Below the pieces are notes generated by a model. The model saw only the letters and a list, made by a program, of their open reading frames with translations, did no database searches and was not told the origin of the DNA. The translations under genes and the position numbers were made by a program. From sequence record MH791398.1: 64,000 nucleotides of DNA; one strand, 5' to 3'. Position 1 is the first letter of the stretch; every line of letters begins with the position of its first letter. Below are positions 8,272-62,047 of the stretch, piece after piece.

Positions 8272-8306
8272 ATTCCTTTCAAGTAAGGGGGAATTCCCCC
8301 TTTCCT

Positions 8307-27472: not shown

Positions 27473-27514
27473 TTTTCGTAGGGGCGAAAGCCCCTTTTCT
27501 CCAAGGATTTAAAA

Positions 27515-52919: not shown

Positions 52920-53211
52920 TCTAAACCCATTCAACAATCCATGGGTTGATGTCAATGTTGATTATCAAACCAGAATTAAACCGGGGGGTTTCTTAAACCC
53001 TTCTCAAGAAGAATATATTACGTTTGAGCGATTCATAGATCTAACTTCCGTTAATGATATGGTTTCTGTAGTTCCGGACCTTGTTCACCCATCAATGGAG
53101 CGGCATCGACACTATCTTAAGATCGGTTCAAACCGTATTCATTACATGGCTACGAAAATAAAATTCACAACCAGTAAAGATACGTTATATTCTATAGAAA
53201 AAGGTTTATAA
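52903..53211 (+). CDS. Hypothetical protein (102 aa)
   Basis: ORF with SD GAGG, followed by terminator. Confidence 0.6.
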   Translation: MMGASDLNPFNNPWVDVNVDYQTRIKPGGFLNPSQEEYITFERFIDLTSVNDMVSVVPDLVHPSMERHRHYLKIGSNRIHYMATKIKFTTSKDTLYSIEKGL

Positions 53212-53229
53212 GGGGATTCGTCCCCTTTT
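53210..53229 (+). terminator. Terminator
   Basis: AAGGGGA-TTCG-TCCCCTTTT. Confidence 0.8.
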
Positions 53230-56223: not shown

Positions 56224-58458
56224 ATGAAAATTGTTACAAATAAACAACCTGTATTTGGGACTGTTATGGAAGAGTCCCGCGATTTTGGTATGAAGTTTGA
56301 TGAAAAAGCTTATACCATTCTTAGTTCTGGGCTTTATAAATTCAAGATCCGAGCTTTCATTCGTGAATTGAGCTGTAACGCAATCGATGGTCACATTGCA
56401 TTGGAAAAGATTGGTGGAACCCCACCGAAATATTTTGATGTAGAGCTTCCGTCTGATATTAATTTGCAATGGAGACTCCGCGATTATGGTATTGGTATGG
56501 ACAAGGATGGTATTTTCAACTTGTTCACCACATATTTTGCATCAACCAAGGAAGATTCTGACGATTTTATCGGTGCATTTGGTCTTGGTTCTAAAAGTCC
56601 GTTCTGCTACACAACAACATTCACTGTAACATCGTGGTGTAAGGGTCTCAAAACCGTCTATAGCATCTTCATGAACAACGGTATACCAAAGTGTGTCCCC
56701 ATCTTCGAAGAACCGTCAGACGAGCCCACAGGTATCGAAATCGTAATCCCTATCGATCAAGATGATATTACCGAAGTTCGGAATGAAGCTCGGGTGGTGT
56801 ACCACACATTTGATAAAGATGGATTTTATCCAAACATCATCAATCAGAATTTCGAGTTGACTAACTACAAGTCATCTGGTTACTATGGTTCCATCATGGA
56901 TAATGGCGTATATGCTGTTATGGGTGGTGTTTCTTACAAGATCCCAGCAAAGCTTTACGAAAATGAGGTTTGTTCGGTATTCTTTAATAATTCATATAAC
57001 TTTATCGATTTTCCTGTTGGGTCTCTCAATCCTCTCCCGAACCGGGAAGAATTGAGTCTTGATAAACACACACTGAATACACTGAATTCTTATTTTAAAT
57101 CCCAATCGGACCAAGTTATTGATGAAGTCAATAAAAAGGTTTCTGAACATGGAAAGGATGCACGAAGTAAAATTCATGCTATTTTGTCTATGGATTTTGG
57201 TGAGCATATCTTTAACAAAGTATCAAAGATTATTGACCATAACGGCAAGTCTCTTCAAGATTGGCGCTTCTTCTACGAAAGTATTACATCTTCGAAAGAA
57301 TGGTCTTTGTTTAAAGATTTCTGTGTGGATTACAGTTATAAAAACAAAAATTTCGTTTATATCGATACATTTAGTAATGCGGTGCGAAATGTTTGGAATC
57401 TTGAACGTGCAAGATATTACGGGTCGTCTCGTAAAATCGAGTTTAATGACTATTTCATGCCGTCAGTAAAGAATAAGCGATATCCATTCCCAATCCTTCT
57501 GTCTAATATGGATGGTAAGTGGAAGGTACGGATCAAGCTTCTTATGAAGTATGGTATCATTCCTAATGAACGGGTTGTTGTTATGAGCGATTACCCTTAT
57601 TCTCGCAAACCTTTCAAGAATGTAACTCGAAATCTCTTTATCCAGATTGCAAAGCGTTACCACAAAGACGATATCGATGTTTTTCATGTAGAGAAGTTGT
57701 ATGATAAGCACGTTCAAGAAATTGAAGAGAAAGAAGCAGAAGAGAAGCGCCAACGTCGTTTAGAAGCACAGCGGAATAGGGCTAAAACTCCACGTTACAA
57801 ACCAGACAACTCGCATTATTATAATAAAGGGTATCGCAGTACTGGCAATTTCCTTGCCAAGGATGTACACGAGCTTAGTGGGCTGTATGGTCTTCGTTCT
57901 GGCGAATATATTGTTGTTGATGGTCATGAAGTTACAGATGGACTTCAAAGTTGGTTATCTGAGATGTTTGATACAACGTTGTATGCATTTCCGAAAACCC
58001 TTGAACGACGGGCTAACATGAATGAGAATTTGACTCTCATTACAAAGGAAATGATCAAAGGTAAACTTGTTGAATATCTCAATAACAATTTAAAGGGTAA
58101 TAAAATTGGTTGGAATATCAATAGGTCTGATAAGCCAAGGGTCGATATGGAAATTACTCGGGAAATGAAGGACTATTTTGGTATCTCGGAATCCGGTGAT
58201 TGGGATCATGATCTTGGTAATATTTATGTTCATGCTCAAGAATATTTGACTGAACATGAATATCAAGTTTATACCGATGTTGTTGAAAACCATCGTCAGA
58301 GTATGTATGATGTATATCATAATTTTTATGACGAAATGAAAAAGCAATTCCCCATGGAATGTGCGATTCTTAGGTTGAAGAAAAATTATAGTTGTGTAAA
58401 AAACGAAGAGTTCGAACTTGCAACTAAACTTATTATGGAAAACTACAAAGGGGTGTAA
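56224..58458 (+). CDS. rIIA: RIIA protein
   Basis: LSSGLYK.KIRA.IRELSCNAID.H, RDYGIGM, YF.STK, IGAFGLGSKSPF.Y GHKL-like N-terminus; precedes rIIB. Confidence 0.93.
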   Translation: MKIVTNKQPVFGTVMEESRDFGMKFDEKAYTILSSGLYKFKIRAFIRELSCNAIDGHIALEKIGGTPPKYFDVELPSDINLQWRLRDYGIGMDKDGIFNLFTTYFASTKEDSDDFIGAFGLGSKSPFCYTTTFTVTSWCKGLKTVYSIFMNNGIPKCVPIFEEPSDEPTGIEIVIPIDQDDITEVRNEARVVYHTFDKDGFYPNIINQNFELTNYKSSGYYGSIMDNGVYAVMGGVSYKIPAKLYENEVCSVFFNNSYNFIDFPVGSLNPLPNREELSLDKHTLNTLNSYFKSQSDQVIDEVNKKVSEHGKDARSKIHAILSMDFGEHIFNKVSKIIDHNGKSLQDWRFFYESITSSKEWSLFKDFCVDYSYKNKNFVYIDTFSNAVRNVWNLERARYYGSSRKIEFNDYFMPSVKNKRYPFPILLSNMDGKWKVRIKLLMKYGIIPNERVVVMSDYPYSRKPFKNVTRNLFIQIAKRYHKDDIDVFHVEKLYDKHVQEIEEKEAEEKRQRRLEAQRNRAKTPRYKPDNSHYYNKGYRSTGNFLAKDVHELSGLYGLRSGEYIVVDGHEVTDGLQSWLSEMFDTTLYAFPKTLERRANMNENLTLITKEMIKGKLVEYLNNNLKGNKIGWNINRSDKPRVDMEITREMKDYFGISESGDWDHDLGNIYVHAQEYLTEHEYQVYTDVVENHRQSMYDVYHNFYDEMKKQFPMECAILRLKKNYSCVKNEEFELATKLIMENYKGV

Positions 58459-58482
58459 GCCCCTTTTTAATGAGGAAATAAA

Positions 58483-59676
58483 ATGGAAACTATCCATATT
58501 GAAAAACTTGAAGCATTGATTCGTAGCGGTATTTACGATGTAACCGGTTATAAAATAAAAGAACTTGACAACAACAGAACTTTTGCATATTACAACCTAG
58601 ACGATCTCGATGTTGTAGAACTTGTTATGTATATCGAGGAAGAACTTGATATAGATCTTGGCGATCTCGATGTACTTGAAGGATGGGAAGCCCTTACAAT
58701 TAAAGAATTGATTAAATTGATGGTTGGGACTAATAAAATCGATTTGCAATTTGATGTACATGATTATTCTGAAAATAAAGTCGAAGAAAGTCGTGATGAT
58801 AAAATTATCCGACTTCATAATCTCGGAATCAGCCAAAACGAAATTTCCCGTCAAACTGGTATCCCTCGTTCAACAGTAGGTGATGTAGTTCGTCGCTATA
58901 AGGGAATTCAGAAGAAGTCGGATAAAACAATCCATTTGAAGGAAATAATCGAACCGGTTCATACCCCCGTGGTATCTTGGAATGCAAGTTATGACTTTAT
59001 TAACTGCTTCATTGATGGAACCCCATACGTTGCAGACCGAGCCCACCCACGGTTTGAAGATGCGTTTCAACTCCTGATCCGCGACAATGATGTGGTCGGT
59101 GCGGTAAACCTGATTTCTATCAAAGAAGCAATCAAAACCTATTCTTCTGGTGATATTCGGATTGAAGGCGACACACTCTACTATCGTGATATTGTTCTTG
59201 ATACATCGATGACCCGAAGAATCATTGATATGTGGGCGTCCGGGGAAGAGTTTGAGTATATGGTTACCTTCCTGAAAAACCTGTTACAGAATCCGCGCCG
59301 TGCGGCTGTATACGAGCTTTTTGACTTCCTGACTCATAGTGACATCAAAATCACCAACGATGGTCATTTCCTAGCGTACAAGCGCGTTACCGAGGATTAT
59401 AAGGATATCCGCACCCACACGTTTGATAATAGTATTGGTTCTAAGCCACGAGTCGAGCCATTTGAGGTAGATGACGACCGAAACAATACTTGTGCTGCGG
59501 GTCTTCATGCTGCTGCTCGTCACTACATCCCATACTATTCATCTTGTGAGAATGACCGGGTTGTGATGGTTAAGATCAACCCAGCCCACGTCGTTGCTAT
59601 CCCAACTGATTACGACAATGCGAAACTTCGTACTTGGACTTATGAAGTAATCTCAGACGTAACTCACGAGTTCTAA
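58483..59676 (+). CDS. rIIB: RIIB protein with extra N-terminal acyl-carrier-protein-like domain
   Basis: HTH, WNAS..FI, FL.NLLQNP...AV.ELFDFL, I.IT.DG, DNSIG, C..GLH, DYDNAKLR match RIIB; first ~85 aa align to AcpP. Confidence 0.9.
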   Translation: METIHIEKLEALIRSGIYDVTGYKIKELDNNRTFAYYNLDDLDVVELVMYIEEELDIDLGDLDVLEGWEALTIKELIKLMVGTNKIDLQFDVHDYSENKVEESRDDKIIRLHNLGISQNEISRQTGIPRSTVGDVVRRYKGIQKKSDKTIHLKEIIEPVHTPVVSWNASYDFINCFIDGTPYVADRAHPRFEDAFQLLIRDNDVVGAVNLISIKEAIKTYSSGDIRIEGDTLYYRDIVLDTSMTRRIIDMWASGEEFEYMVTFLKNLLQNPRRAAVYELFDFLTHSDIKITNDGHFLAYKRVTEDYKDIRTHTFDNSIGSKPRVEPFEVDDDRNNTCAAGLHAAARHYIPYYSSCENDRVVMVKINPAHVVAIPTDYDNAKLRTWTYEVISDVTHEF

Positions 59677-59781: not shown

Positions 59782-60735
59782 ATGGCTATCAGTAATTACG
59801 AAACTGTCATCTCACAGATTGTCGAGATGAAAGAGAACAAGGGTATGGGTTCGCGAGCAATTGCGAAAGAACTTGGTATTTCTAAATCTTCCGTAAACTA
59901 TTATTACGAGCGTTTCATGGAAGAGAACAATATTGTGGACGATATCAAAACCGGTCCCCGTGTTCTAGTTCTGGATATTGAAACCGCTCCGATTATGGCT
60001 CATGTATGGCGCTTGTTTAAGACCAACGTTGGTCTGAATATGATCGAGTCCGATTGGTATATGCTTAGTTTTGCTGCTAAATGGTTTGACAGTGATGAAA
60101 TCATTTATATGGACCAGCGAAATGCACCAAATATCGAAGATGATTCAGAAATGCTGAAAGTTCTATGGGAGCTTCTTGACGAAGCTGATATCGTTCTTCA
60201 TCAGAATGGTCGTCGGTTTGATATTCCAAAAATTCGCAGTCGTATGATCGTTCATGGTATGAAACCGTTCTCTACCGTGAAGCATATTGATACTCTTGAG
60301 ATCGCAAAACGCACGTTTGGTTTTACTTCCAACAAGCTGGAATATATGACCGATAAGCTATGCACAGAAACCAAGAAATCTAAACATACTCAATTCCCCG
60401 GTTTTGAATTGTGGAAAGAATGCTTGGCTGGTAATATCGAAGCTTGGAAAGAGATGGAAGAATATAATATTGATGATATCGTATCTCTCCAAGAACTATA
60501 TGTTAAATTGGCTCCATGGTCGGATCGTCTTCCGAACTTCTCTCTTTATACAGATTCAGACAAATTCACTTGCGTATGTGGAAATCATGAGTTTGAAGAT
60601 GCCGGGTTCGCGTATACCGAAGTTAGTAAGTTCAAACAATATAAATGCACCCACTGTGGTAAACACTGGCGTGGTCGCAAGAACCAAATCACTAAGATTA
60701 AGTCAAAACTTCTGTTGACTAATGCTCGTGAATAA
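59782..60735 (+). CDS. HTH + DEDD (RNase H-like/DnaQ) exonuclease + Zn ribbon
   Basis: GSRAIAKELGISKSSV HTH; VLDIETAP, NGRRFDIP, IDTL, YNIDDI; CVCG..CTHCG. Confidence 0.8.
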   Translation: MAISNYETVISQIVEMKENKGMGSRAIAKELGISKSSVNYYYERFMEENNIVDDIKTGPRVLVLDIETAPIMAHVWRLFKTNVGLNMIESDWYMLSFAAKWFDSDEIIYMDQRNAPNIEDDSEMLKVLWELLDEADIVLHQNGRRFDIPKIRSRMIVHGMKPFSTVKHIDTLEIAKRTFGFTSNKLEYMTDKLCTETKKSKHTQFPGFELWKECLAGNIEAWKEMEEYNIDDIVSLQELYVKLAPWSDRLPNFSLYTDSDKFTCVCGNHEFEDAGFAYTEVSKFKQYKCTHCGKHWRGRKNQITKIKSKLLLTNARE

Positions 60736-60789: not shown

Positions 60790-61083
60790 ATGGTTGATAT
60801 GTTTGGTAATGAGCTTGTGGTCGGTGATTATATCGTCCACGGTATGGACAACGGTTCTACCCTGTTATTGGGTCGTGTGTTCAAGCTAGGTGAGAAGAAA
60901 TGTTGGTTCTACTATGTTCATAAGCATGAACAGGGGTACTATGAAATGTGGTTGAACAACCGTCATAACCGAGACTATGACAGAGTTGTTAAGTATACTG
61001 GTGATATCCATCTGATCAATAAAGGGTTGGGTGGTATTCGTGATGAAAATGGTAAATTGGTTGATCGATTTTTAGAATTTTGA
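60790..61083 (+). CDS. Hypothetical protein
   Basis: SD GAGGA; DMFGNELVVGD SH3/KOW-like start. Confidence 0.65.
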   Translation: MVDMFGNELVVGDYIVHGMDNGSTLLLGRVFKLGEKKCWFYYVHKHEQGYYEMWLNNRHNRDYDRVVKYTGDIHLINKGLGGIRDENGKLVDRFLEF

Positions 61084-61090
61084 GGTGTAT

Positions 61091-61375
61091 ATGTTTAAAT
61101 ATAAAGTGTGGTTTGCGTCGGAAGAACAAAAAGCTGAAATGATCAGGTATATAAATGAAGATGAGTTGGGACCTTGTAAAGTAGTTGTACCATATCTTGA
61201 AGAAATTGATGTTGGGGTGAAATATGATTTTGAATCAAATAAAAAACTAGAAACTTATTCTTATTCTGACGGGACGTTAAAAACCGTATTTAATGGGAAA
61301 TATAACGATGGTATAAACCTCTTTATACCGGAAGATATTGACGATGGTCGGGTGTGTTGTGAGGCAATAGAATGA
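61091..61375 (+). CDS. Hypothetical protein
   Basis: SD GAGG; start 61085 (GTG) or 61091. Confidence 0.6.
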   Translation: MFKYKVWFASEEQKAEMIRYINEDELGPCKVVVPYLEEIDVGVKYDFESNKKLETYSYSDGTLKTVFNGKYNDGINLFIPEDIDDGRVCCEAIE

Positions 61376-61668
61376 AAATTTTTCAAGAATACAAAAACGG
61401 CAAGCTAATTGAAACCAAAGGCCCATTTTCTGTAATCCGGTGTAGTCGTTATTATCTGGTGGCGGTTATTAACGGGGAGAAGATAGAACTAGGTCAGTGC
61501 AATGATTATGAAAAAACTTATAAAAAAGGTATTGACCAATGGATCTCTAAGGTGTACTCTAGGTGTATTGATACAGAAGAGAGTTACCGTTGGCAGGCTG
61601 AGAACCTTATCAAGCAAGCTGACGGAGAACGAGAGATTATTGAATTAATCAAATCACTGAGGGAATAA
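61372..61668 (+). CDS. Hypothetical protein
   Basis: ATGA overlap in operon. Confidence 0.6.
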   Translation: MKIFQEYKNGKLIETKGPFSVIRCSRYYLVAVINGEKIELGQCNDYEKTYKKGIDQWISKVYSRCIDTEESYRWQAENLIKQADGEREIIELIKSLRE

Positions 61669-61670
61669 TT

Positions 61671-61784
61671 ATGGAAATCATCGATATCATTTATCAACCA
61701 GTATGTTTTTGCCCTGAATGTGGCGGTGCCCTTGATGGTGGTATCGACGATGTGTGCGAATACTGCACAACAGAAGAGGAATAA
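61671..61784 (+). CDS. 37-aa Zn-ribbon micro-protein; not in ORF track
   Basis: MEIIDIIYQPVCFCPECGGALDGGIDDVCEYCTTEEE; SD GAGG. Confidence 0.5.
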   Translation: MEIIDIIYQPVCFCPECGGALDGGIDDVCEYCTTEEE

Positions 61785-61789
61785 CAATT

Positions 61790-62047
61790 ATGGATATGAT
61801 CGAATACTACGACTCTTTGGGTTGGAAACCTTTTCGTGAGTATATGTGTGATGTCATCTATATGGAATATGATGCACAACTGGTGATTCGCACAAAAGAT
61901 CTTGGAGAACCACCACATTATAAAGATGTCTTCCTTGTTACCTTAAACTGGGAACAGGGACACGGCAACAACTGGTATTTTGAAACAGAAGATGGTTTGA
62001 TTTTCAAGCCAGACGAAGTAAAAGAATTTTTGTTCGATTATAGTTGA
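61790..62047 (+). CDS. Hypothetical protein
   Basis: Start adjusted to SD GAGGA. Confidence 0.6.
   Translation: MDMIEYYDSLGWKPFREYMCDVIYMEYDAQLVIRTKDLGEPPHYKDVFLVTLNWEQGHGNNWYFETEDGLIFKPDEVKEFLFDYS

Follow-up and report, generated by a model that had tools for sequence, protein, structure and literature searches.

A 64,000-nucleotide stretch of sequence record MH791398.1 (the window, meaning the whole stretch) contains adjacent rIIA and rIIB genes, and the RIIB protein encoded there begins with a domain that has the fold of an acyl carrier protein (ACP). The DNA of the window is 100% identical to that of Aeromonas phages AS-zj, AS-sw, Asswx_1, AsSzw2 and Aszh-1 and 95.6% identical to that of CC2. 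These are T4-like phages of the Straboviridae, subfamily Emmerichvirinae, genus Ceceduovirus. The rIIA gene, directly upstream of rIIB, encodes a protein of 744 amino acids (725 in T4), and the same rIIA-rIIB order is present in related contigs. RIIB has 397 amino acids, compared with 312 in T4 (NC_000866). The T4 protein aligns, from its residue 14 onwards, only to residues 107–397 of the window protein (39% identity over 291 residues), so that approximately 95–105 N-terminal residues are extra. The remainder places the protein in the RIIB family – it has the conserved core and, before it, a helix-turn-helix (HTH) domain, and its gene immediately follows rIIA in a T4-like genome – and its relatives carry PF26926 (Phage_T4_rIIB). 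Coordinates are given in Table 1.

The extension and the rest of RIIB are encoded in one uninterrupted open reading frame (ORF) of 397 codons, which is annotated as a single ORF in 15 near-identical phage records. Every related phage record also annotates the fusion as one gene. A Shine-Dalgarno sequence precedes the ATG of rIIB, and there is none at any ATG, GTG or TTG in codons 2–160.

A full-length AlphaFold2 model of RIIB, made from an alignment of 62 sequences, has a mean predicted local distance difference test score (pLDDT) of 87.9 and a predicted template modelling score (pTM) of only 0.55. RIIB consists of three modules on flexible linkers: an AcpP-type fold (residues 1–90), the HTH domain (104–139) and the core (164–397). 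The pLDDT of the linkers and the low pTM describe three beads on a string, with the N-terminal module tethered independently of the others. Several HTH families, including PF25787 and PF13384, match residues 106–142, all under their Pfam gathering cut-offs. T4 RIIB shares the HTH domain, the core and the gene position directly after rIIA, but it begins about 13 residues before the HTH domain, where the window protein adds approximately 100 residues made up of the ACP-like domain and a linker. For the core, no structural relative was found in the PDB: a Foldseek search with the whole model returned mostly ACPs and no credible core match. The core contains the motif C337-x2-G-L-H342, in which Cys337 and His342 are invariant across 62 homologues, as are N270, K300, Y348 and K381. 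For this uncharacterised family, the motif might indicate an active site or a binding site.

Residues 1–90 are a true homologue of ACP, far beyond chance resemblance. The phosphopantetheine-binding (PP-binding) family PF00550 matches residues 14–78 with 27.7 bits when the piece is searched and 24.1 bits in the full protein, above the gathering cut-off of 20.8, and two PHROG 'acyl carrier protein' families match as well. In a single BLASTP comparison, the domain is 39% identical to E. coli AcpP over 54 amino acids (E=2e-9). E. coli AcpP chains in the PDB are matched at E~1e-5 by the single sequence, and a profile of nine RIIB N-terminal domains matches AcpP chains there at E=1e-9. Polyubiquitin chains, the top PDB matches in a phmmer search, were rejected as an artefact of nine summed stretches of ~2 bits each. 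An AlphaFold2 model of the domain (19-sequence alignment, pLDDT 86.4) has helices at residues 6–21, 41–55, 68–70 and 73–82, which is the ACP topology, and a small additional two-stranded sheet of residues 2–5 with 86–89. When this model was compared with the PDB using Foldseek, all of the top 50 matches were ACPs, with TM-scores of 0.60–0.75 on target length.

The closest relatives in form are the AcpP proteins of E. coli and other gamma-proteobacteria, with which the domain shares the helix topology, including the short third helix, and strong acidity. The AcpP helix II motif, LD-x-LD-x-VELVM-x-x-EEE-x-D, is nearly identical in the window domain. AcpP differs in being a free protein of ~78 amino acids with an acceptor serine, while the window domain is fused within a protein of 397 amino acids and has Asp41 at that site and hydrophobic residues at helix III positions. 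The best NCBIfam family is TIGR00517 (the ACP of fatty acid synthesis), but its score of 28.7 bits is far under the equivalog cut-off of 70.45, and for this reason the domain is classed as a homologue and not as an AcpP equivalog. It is a PP-binding superfamily fold without the defining serine, not a functional carrier, and the name 'acyl carrier protein' is unsuitable for it.

The serine of AcpP that accepts phosphopantetheine, Ser36, corresponds to Asp41 in the motif L-D-D-L-D. Asp41 is the first residue of helix II in the model, and there is no serine or threonine within five residues of it. With the acceptor serine absent, the canonical site, judged from its sequence, cannot take phosphopantetheine or an acyl chain. 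Upstream of the site, KELDNNRTF occupies residues 26–34; helix II, the 'recognition helix', lies within residues 39–59, which correspond to AcpP residues 34–54.

Ten RIIB domains of this kind (the window and nine others) were aligned with E. coli AcpP. AcpP L37, D38, E41, L42 and E47 are invariant in all ten. D35 and M44 are each retained in nine and D51 in eight, E48 is acidic in all ten and E53 in nine, and V43 is V, I or A. The acceptor position itself varies – two of the domains have D, one has S, three have G and four have E. The codons at this site are GAT in the window, CC2 and AS-szw, AGT in orthologue cluster P0002, GGA in phage 65 and GAA in P0010. All ten domains are acidic, with net charges of −10 to −16. 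In three pairwise comparisons among CC2, AS-szw and the window, the ratio of non-synonymous to synonymous substitution rates (dN/dS) in the domain was 0.14–0.24, and the domain has been retained in lineages that are just 20–45% identical within it. By these comparisons of sequence, the acidic and hydrophobic docking face of helix II has been kept under purifying selection. The site that defines a carrier looks to be the sole position of the motif released from constraint, rather than one selected as a phosphate mimic. Asp, Ser, Gly and Glu are all common residues in the first turn of a helix, so that no phosphate mimic is needed to account for Asp41, and the Gly and Ser states argue against one.

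A first-pass annotation, made from the letters of the window, had described a RIIB lengthened at its N-terminus by an ACP-fold module, with Asp in place of the acceptor serine (and thus presumably beyond loading), the acidic recognition helix retained, and translation as a single product with the HTH domain. The searches, models and alignments agree with that description. Its suggestion that the aspartate could mimic the charge of holo-ACP finds no support in the survey of orthologues, in which D, S, G or E is found at the site and the adjacent residues of helix II are conserved.

Table 1. Features of the rII region and recurring hairpins in the window
Feature	Position	Strand	Basis
rIIA gene, 744 amino acids, directly upstream of rIIB	56224..58458	+	phrog_612 'RIIA lysis inhibitor', E=2e-162
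GC-rich hairpin AGGGGTGTAAGCCCCTTT between rIIA and rIIB; rIIA stop codon in loop	58449..58466	+	sequence reading
Shine-Dalgarno GAGGA, 6 nt 5' of the ATG at 58483	58472..58476	+	direct sequence reading
rIIB gene, 397 amino acids and stop	58483..59676	+	ORF list; phrog_609 'RIIB lysis inhibitor', E=4e-106
ACP-like (PP-binding fold) domain, residues 1–90, net charge −13	58483..58752	+	PF00550, PDB matches, AlphaFold2, Foldseek
Helix II 'recognition helix' motif LDDLDVVELVMYIEEELDIDL, residues 39–59 (AcpP 34–54)	58597..58659	+	column-wise comparison
GAT, Asp41, at the site of AcpP Ser36	58603..58605	+	codon reading, alignment
Predicted disordered linker, residues 92–100	58756..58782	+	AlphaFold2 pLDDT <50
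HTH domain, residues 104–139, net charge ~+5	58792..58899	+	AlphaFold2 helices 104–113, 118–125 and 129–139; aligns with T4 RIIB N-terminus
Second predicted disordered linker, residues 147–158	58921..58956	+	AlphaFold2 pLDDT <50
Conserved RIIB core, residues 164–397	58972..59673	+	62-homologue alignment; AlphaFold2 pLDDT mostly >85
Matching hairpin AGGGGAGAAATCCCCTTT directly after rIIB stop codon	59680..59697	+	sequence reading
Further hairpins AGGGG-N8-CCCCTTT	8286–8303, 27480–27497, 53211–53228

The fusion has a narrow distribution. A survey of 5.8 billion protein clusters yielded 63 RIIB homologues, and when these were scanned with a local hidden Markov model of the N-terminal domain, only the window protein and P0001–P0006, P0008, P0010 and P0011 were matched. 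No clusters were added by a profile search with eight members of the clade, and a word-indexed protein search with residues 1–95 found the AS-szw cluster only. IMG/VR has the fusion only in AS-zj, CC2 and phage 65, as found with the closer alignment, the nine-sequence alignment being too divergent for a pattern search. In BFVD, phage 65.2 was the only RIIB match. Within the phage collection, 19 records contain the domain by tblastn, and ZPAH1, whose protein has a precomputed PF00550 match, also has the fusion. Aswh_1 has a core like that of ZPAH1 and probably carries the fusion too, and the cultured phages with the fusion number ~21. PF00550 scores above threshold in only three orthologue clusters and below it in the others.

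A maximum-likelihood tree of the core places all of the ACP-bearing RIIBs, together with P0009, in one clade with support of 100/99. The domain is absent from the sister group, which consists of P0012 and, from Pantoea phage Phynn, P0013. P0009, a protein of 551 amino acids inside the clade, has a different N-terminal extension of 242 amino acids. P0007 (305 amino acids) was considered as a natural deletion of the domain and rejected: its contig starts only 162 nt upstream, and the C-terminal half of the ACP-like domain can still be read in frame there, which makes the short form a truncation at the contig end. A metagenomic relative of phage 65 rIIB (locus L005, 1–165) has an in-frame stop in the ACP-like region, 18 nt from the end of the contig. 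This is most likely an artefact of the assembly end, the alternative being a disrupted variant.

Two of the clusters, P0010 and P0011, have a different order of modules: HTH, ACP-like, core. In this type, residues 59–112 match phrog_5934 'acyl carrier protein' at E=5.5e-10, and residues 10–50 align weakly to the T4 HTH domain. The contigs share the gene order of the window (topoisomerase, small genes, rIIA, rIIB and an RNase-H-like gene). The internal domains resemble the N-terminal type no more than E. coli AcpP does; the ACP fold may have been captured once, with later rearrangement and divergence, or twice. The differing position of the module relative to the HTH domain fits a self-contained docking unit.

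Other RIIB proteins have other inserts. Those of Proteus PM2 and phiP4-3 have ~100 amino acids between the HTH domain and the core that are not ACP-like, and those of Aeromonas phages 31 and AS4 (Biquartavirus) have an insert at the same place that is also not ACP-like and may be a second HTH (loci L020–L023 for the four). The fusion is therefore specific to a lineage and not to the host genus. Pfam scans of ten other long RIIB homologues recognised no further accessory domain. RIIB appears to combine a constant core with accessory slots that vary.

Compared with AS-szw, the window shows a mosaic boundary: identity per 200-nt segment is 91–100% from 55483 to ~59080, then 100% from 59083 to ~61300, a few differences immediately after rIIB excepted. 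The divergence ends abruptly near 59083. The first ~200 codons of rIIB thus travel with rIIA as a block, and the recombination breakpoint is inside rIIB. The ACP-like domain is the most divergent part of rIIB in this comparison (91% nucleotide identity).

Further downstream, identity to CC2 falls to 5–54% at 61083–61482 and identity to AS-szw to 49% at 61683–61882; these hypervariable cassettes of small genes are replaced or highly divergent in sister phages. The gene directly 3' of rIIB (59782–60735, + strand, 317 amino acids) has this position in all related loci examined (L003, L004, L005 and L008). In its product, an HTH-like segment at the N-terminus is followed by an RNase-H-like 3'-5' exonuclease domain (PF13482 in relatives) and, at the C-terminus, by a CxxC motif resembling a zinc ribbon; the gene is labelled 'DNA polymerase exonuclease subunit' in phage 65. 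Upstream, the N-terminal ~310 residues of RIIA align with T4 RIIA at 35% identity, and the C-terminal ~430 are beyond BLASTP detection. The same ~310 residues also match the N-terminal part of the long phrog_609 profile. The hairpins that flank rIIB belong to a recurring element, AGGGG-N8-CCCCTTT, with five sites in the window and six strand matches, compared with 0.04 expected by chance. All four sites that were checked (27480, 53211, 58449 and 59680) lie between ORFs, and the hairpins are probably intergenic terminators or RNA-stabilising elements.

No close stand-alone ancestor of the domain was found: a phmmer search of residues 1–95 against 1.84 billion representatives gave 19 matches at E<1e-3, the best at E=3.5e-6. 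Stand-alone phage 'carrier domain' proteins do exist (phrog_5934 and phrog_4154; in BFVD, those of phiCbK, Motura and pf16); these are small ACP folds that are not fused to RIIB. Among the most similar stand-alone proteins, four small metagenomic relatives have no serine at the acceptor site, which is E in P0066, A in P0072 and P0073, and D in P0074. P0072 (locus L001, 6001–6285) is encoded on a 175-kb phage-like contig with TerD, vWA and NAMPT genes, not near rII genes. ACP folds without the serine may be a wider theme in phages.

The use of the fold as a docking or regulatory subunit, rather than as a carrier, is known from cells. Foldseek matches of the domain include ACP in MukBEF (at the MukB neck), AcpM on the membrane proteins MmpL5 and EmbC, and the ACP of the Ycf2-FtsHi motor; the Nfs1-ISD11 complex is a further case of ACP as a non-catalytic bound subunit. 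All of these are the cell's own ACPs, loadable and bound non-covalently, whereas the fold in RIIB is covalently tethered to a phage protein and, on its sequence, non-loadable. Full-text searches of the literature found no paper describing the fusion, in line with the first-pass remark that no description of it was known. The domain is visible in databases but undiscussed.

What the rIIA and rIIB products do biochemically has yet to be established (PMC2993671, PMC10312443). Expressed on its own, RIIB is toxic, and RIIA and RIIB counter RexAB by an unknown mechanism (PMC10312443, PMC13716836). For a bacterial gasdermin system, expression of RIIB is by itself a sufficient trigger, and phages that lose RIIB escape it (PMC10312443). 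Fatty acid synthesis enzymes and SpoT are docked by ACP through helix II and its L42-V43-M44 triad, which acidic residues flank (PMC3340395).

The reading tentatively preferred here, which is somewhat short of probable, is that the module would serve only as a protein-protein docking device, a permanently 'apo' surrogate of ACP that cannot be loaded. With helix II it would attach to a basic patch of a protein whose usual partner is ACP. The likeliest target would be a host client of ACP that tolerates or prefers the apo form, at the inner membrane or nucleoid, for example PlsB, MukB or AcpS, and docking would either place the RIIA/RIIB complex beside the client or block it. The idea in the earlier annotation of an ACP decoy carried by the rII complex is compatible with the conserved helix II face. 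Its targets, like those given here, are inferred, and one of them, SpoT, is unlikely because it does not bind apo-ACP (review PMC3896788). MukB remains a candidate since it binds apo- and holo-AcpP equally, with its ATPase stimulated equally by both (PMC8602292). PlsB, the glycerol-3-phosphate acyltransferase, remains one since apo-ACP inhibits it more strongly than holo-ACP does (PMC3896788). As binding targets, RIIA or the basic HTH domain of RIIB itself are equally open.

If the partner were within the phage, the acidic domain would bind RIIA, or would fold onto the HTH domain as a DNA-mimicking autoinhibitor, and so regulate rII assembly or DNA binding without any host client. This is possible, if rather unlikely. 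A domain with a charge of −13 adjoins an HTH domain of about +5 on a flexible linker, the divergent block of rIIA and early rIIB codons is compatible with co-adaptation with RIIA, and the unrelated inserts in the HTH-core slot of Proteus PM2 and Aeromonas phage 31 suggest a generally variable regulatory region. Set against this, AlphaFold2 does not pack the domain confidently against the remainder of RIIB (low pTM, disordered linkers), and RIIA is near the length of its T4 counterpart, although BLASTP aligned only the first ~310 amino acids. Such a role does not account for the preservation of the exact AcpP helix II face, including L-V/I-M, in place of generic acidity. That same face is a difficulty for the proposal that the extra domain is a shield, masking or altering a part of RIIB sensed by host defences such as the CARD-gasdermin systems triggered by T6 RIIB. 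RIIB does trigger a gasdermin system that phages escape by losing it (PMC10312443), and the N-terminal and inter-domain regions of RIIB do vary between lineages, but nothing points to sensing of the N-terminus, and an ACP fold with helix II kept is not what a shield would explain. This proposal is very improbable.

Low probability, though not quite so low, is given to a decaying relic, in which an ACP gene was fused once to rIIB, lost its serine and has persisted without function. The drift of the serine site among D, S, G and E would fit such a history, as would the rapid evolution of the domain relative to the rest of rIIB in the comparison with AS-szw, its detection by Pfam above threshold in so few orthologue clusters, and the different N-terminal extension of P0009 within the same clade. 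The selection data disfavour it: dN/dS is low, there are no stops or frameshifts in the ~21 phage records or the metagenomic relatives, acidic surface residues are invariant at 20–45% overall identity, and the fold is confidently predicted. At the other extreme, a working carrier, loaded with phosphopantetheine and bearing an acyl or other group, has almost no likelihood for this phage, since its sequence contradicts it. The homology to AcpP is true and P0002 keeps LDSLD, but in the window the acceptor position is Asp and neither Ser nor Thr is close by, nine of the ten orthologue clusters have no Ser there, and the TIGR00517 score is far from its cut-off. Searches for a second ACP-like gene, made in the window and in the 228-kb genome of the sister phage AsSzw2, found none.

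Several observations weigh against the apo-ACP surrogate as well. Approximately 99% of the 2,293 phage records that encode RIIB have no such domain (~1% have the fusion), and those without it include other T4-like Aeromonas phages; the domain is therefore an accessory and not central to rII function. The acidic helix III positions of AcpP, E57 and E60, are mostly hydrophobic in the RIIB domains, and the docking surface therefore copies that of AcpP only in part. P0002, with its canonical motif, might be loaded. Since ACP folds in general conserve helix II, part of the signal may be structural.

The genes rIIA and rIIB are among the most famous in genetics, and it is now known that they act against RexAB and set off other defence systems. 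The presence on RIIB of a well-understood interaction module points to a class of partners, proteins with an ACP docking site, and the domain is a small, soluble handle for pull-down experiments and a new route to the function of the rII proteins. It is also a clean natural example of a carrier-protein fold turned into a pure binding module, with the recognition residues kept and only the cofactor serine freed from constraint. The fusion is limited to one small clade and may be a lineage-specific accessory of limited generality. A wider, Rosetta-stone reading, which is doubtful, is that the rII proteins of T4-like phages generally work with host ACP, or on an ACP-dependent protein of the membrane or nucleoid, and that in the Emmerichvirinae this partner has been hard-wired as a non-loadable copy. 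If that reading were true, the 70-year-old question of the biochemical role of rII would become directly testable.

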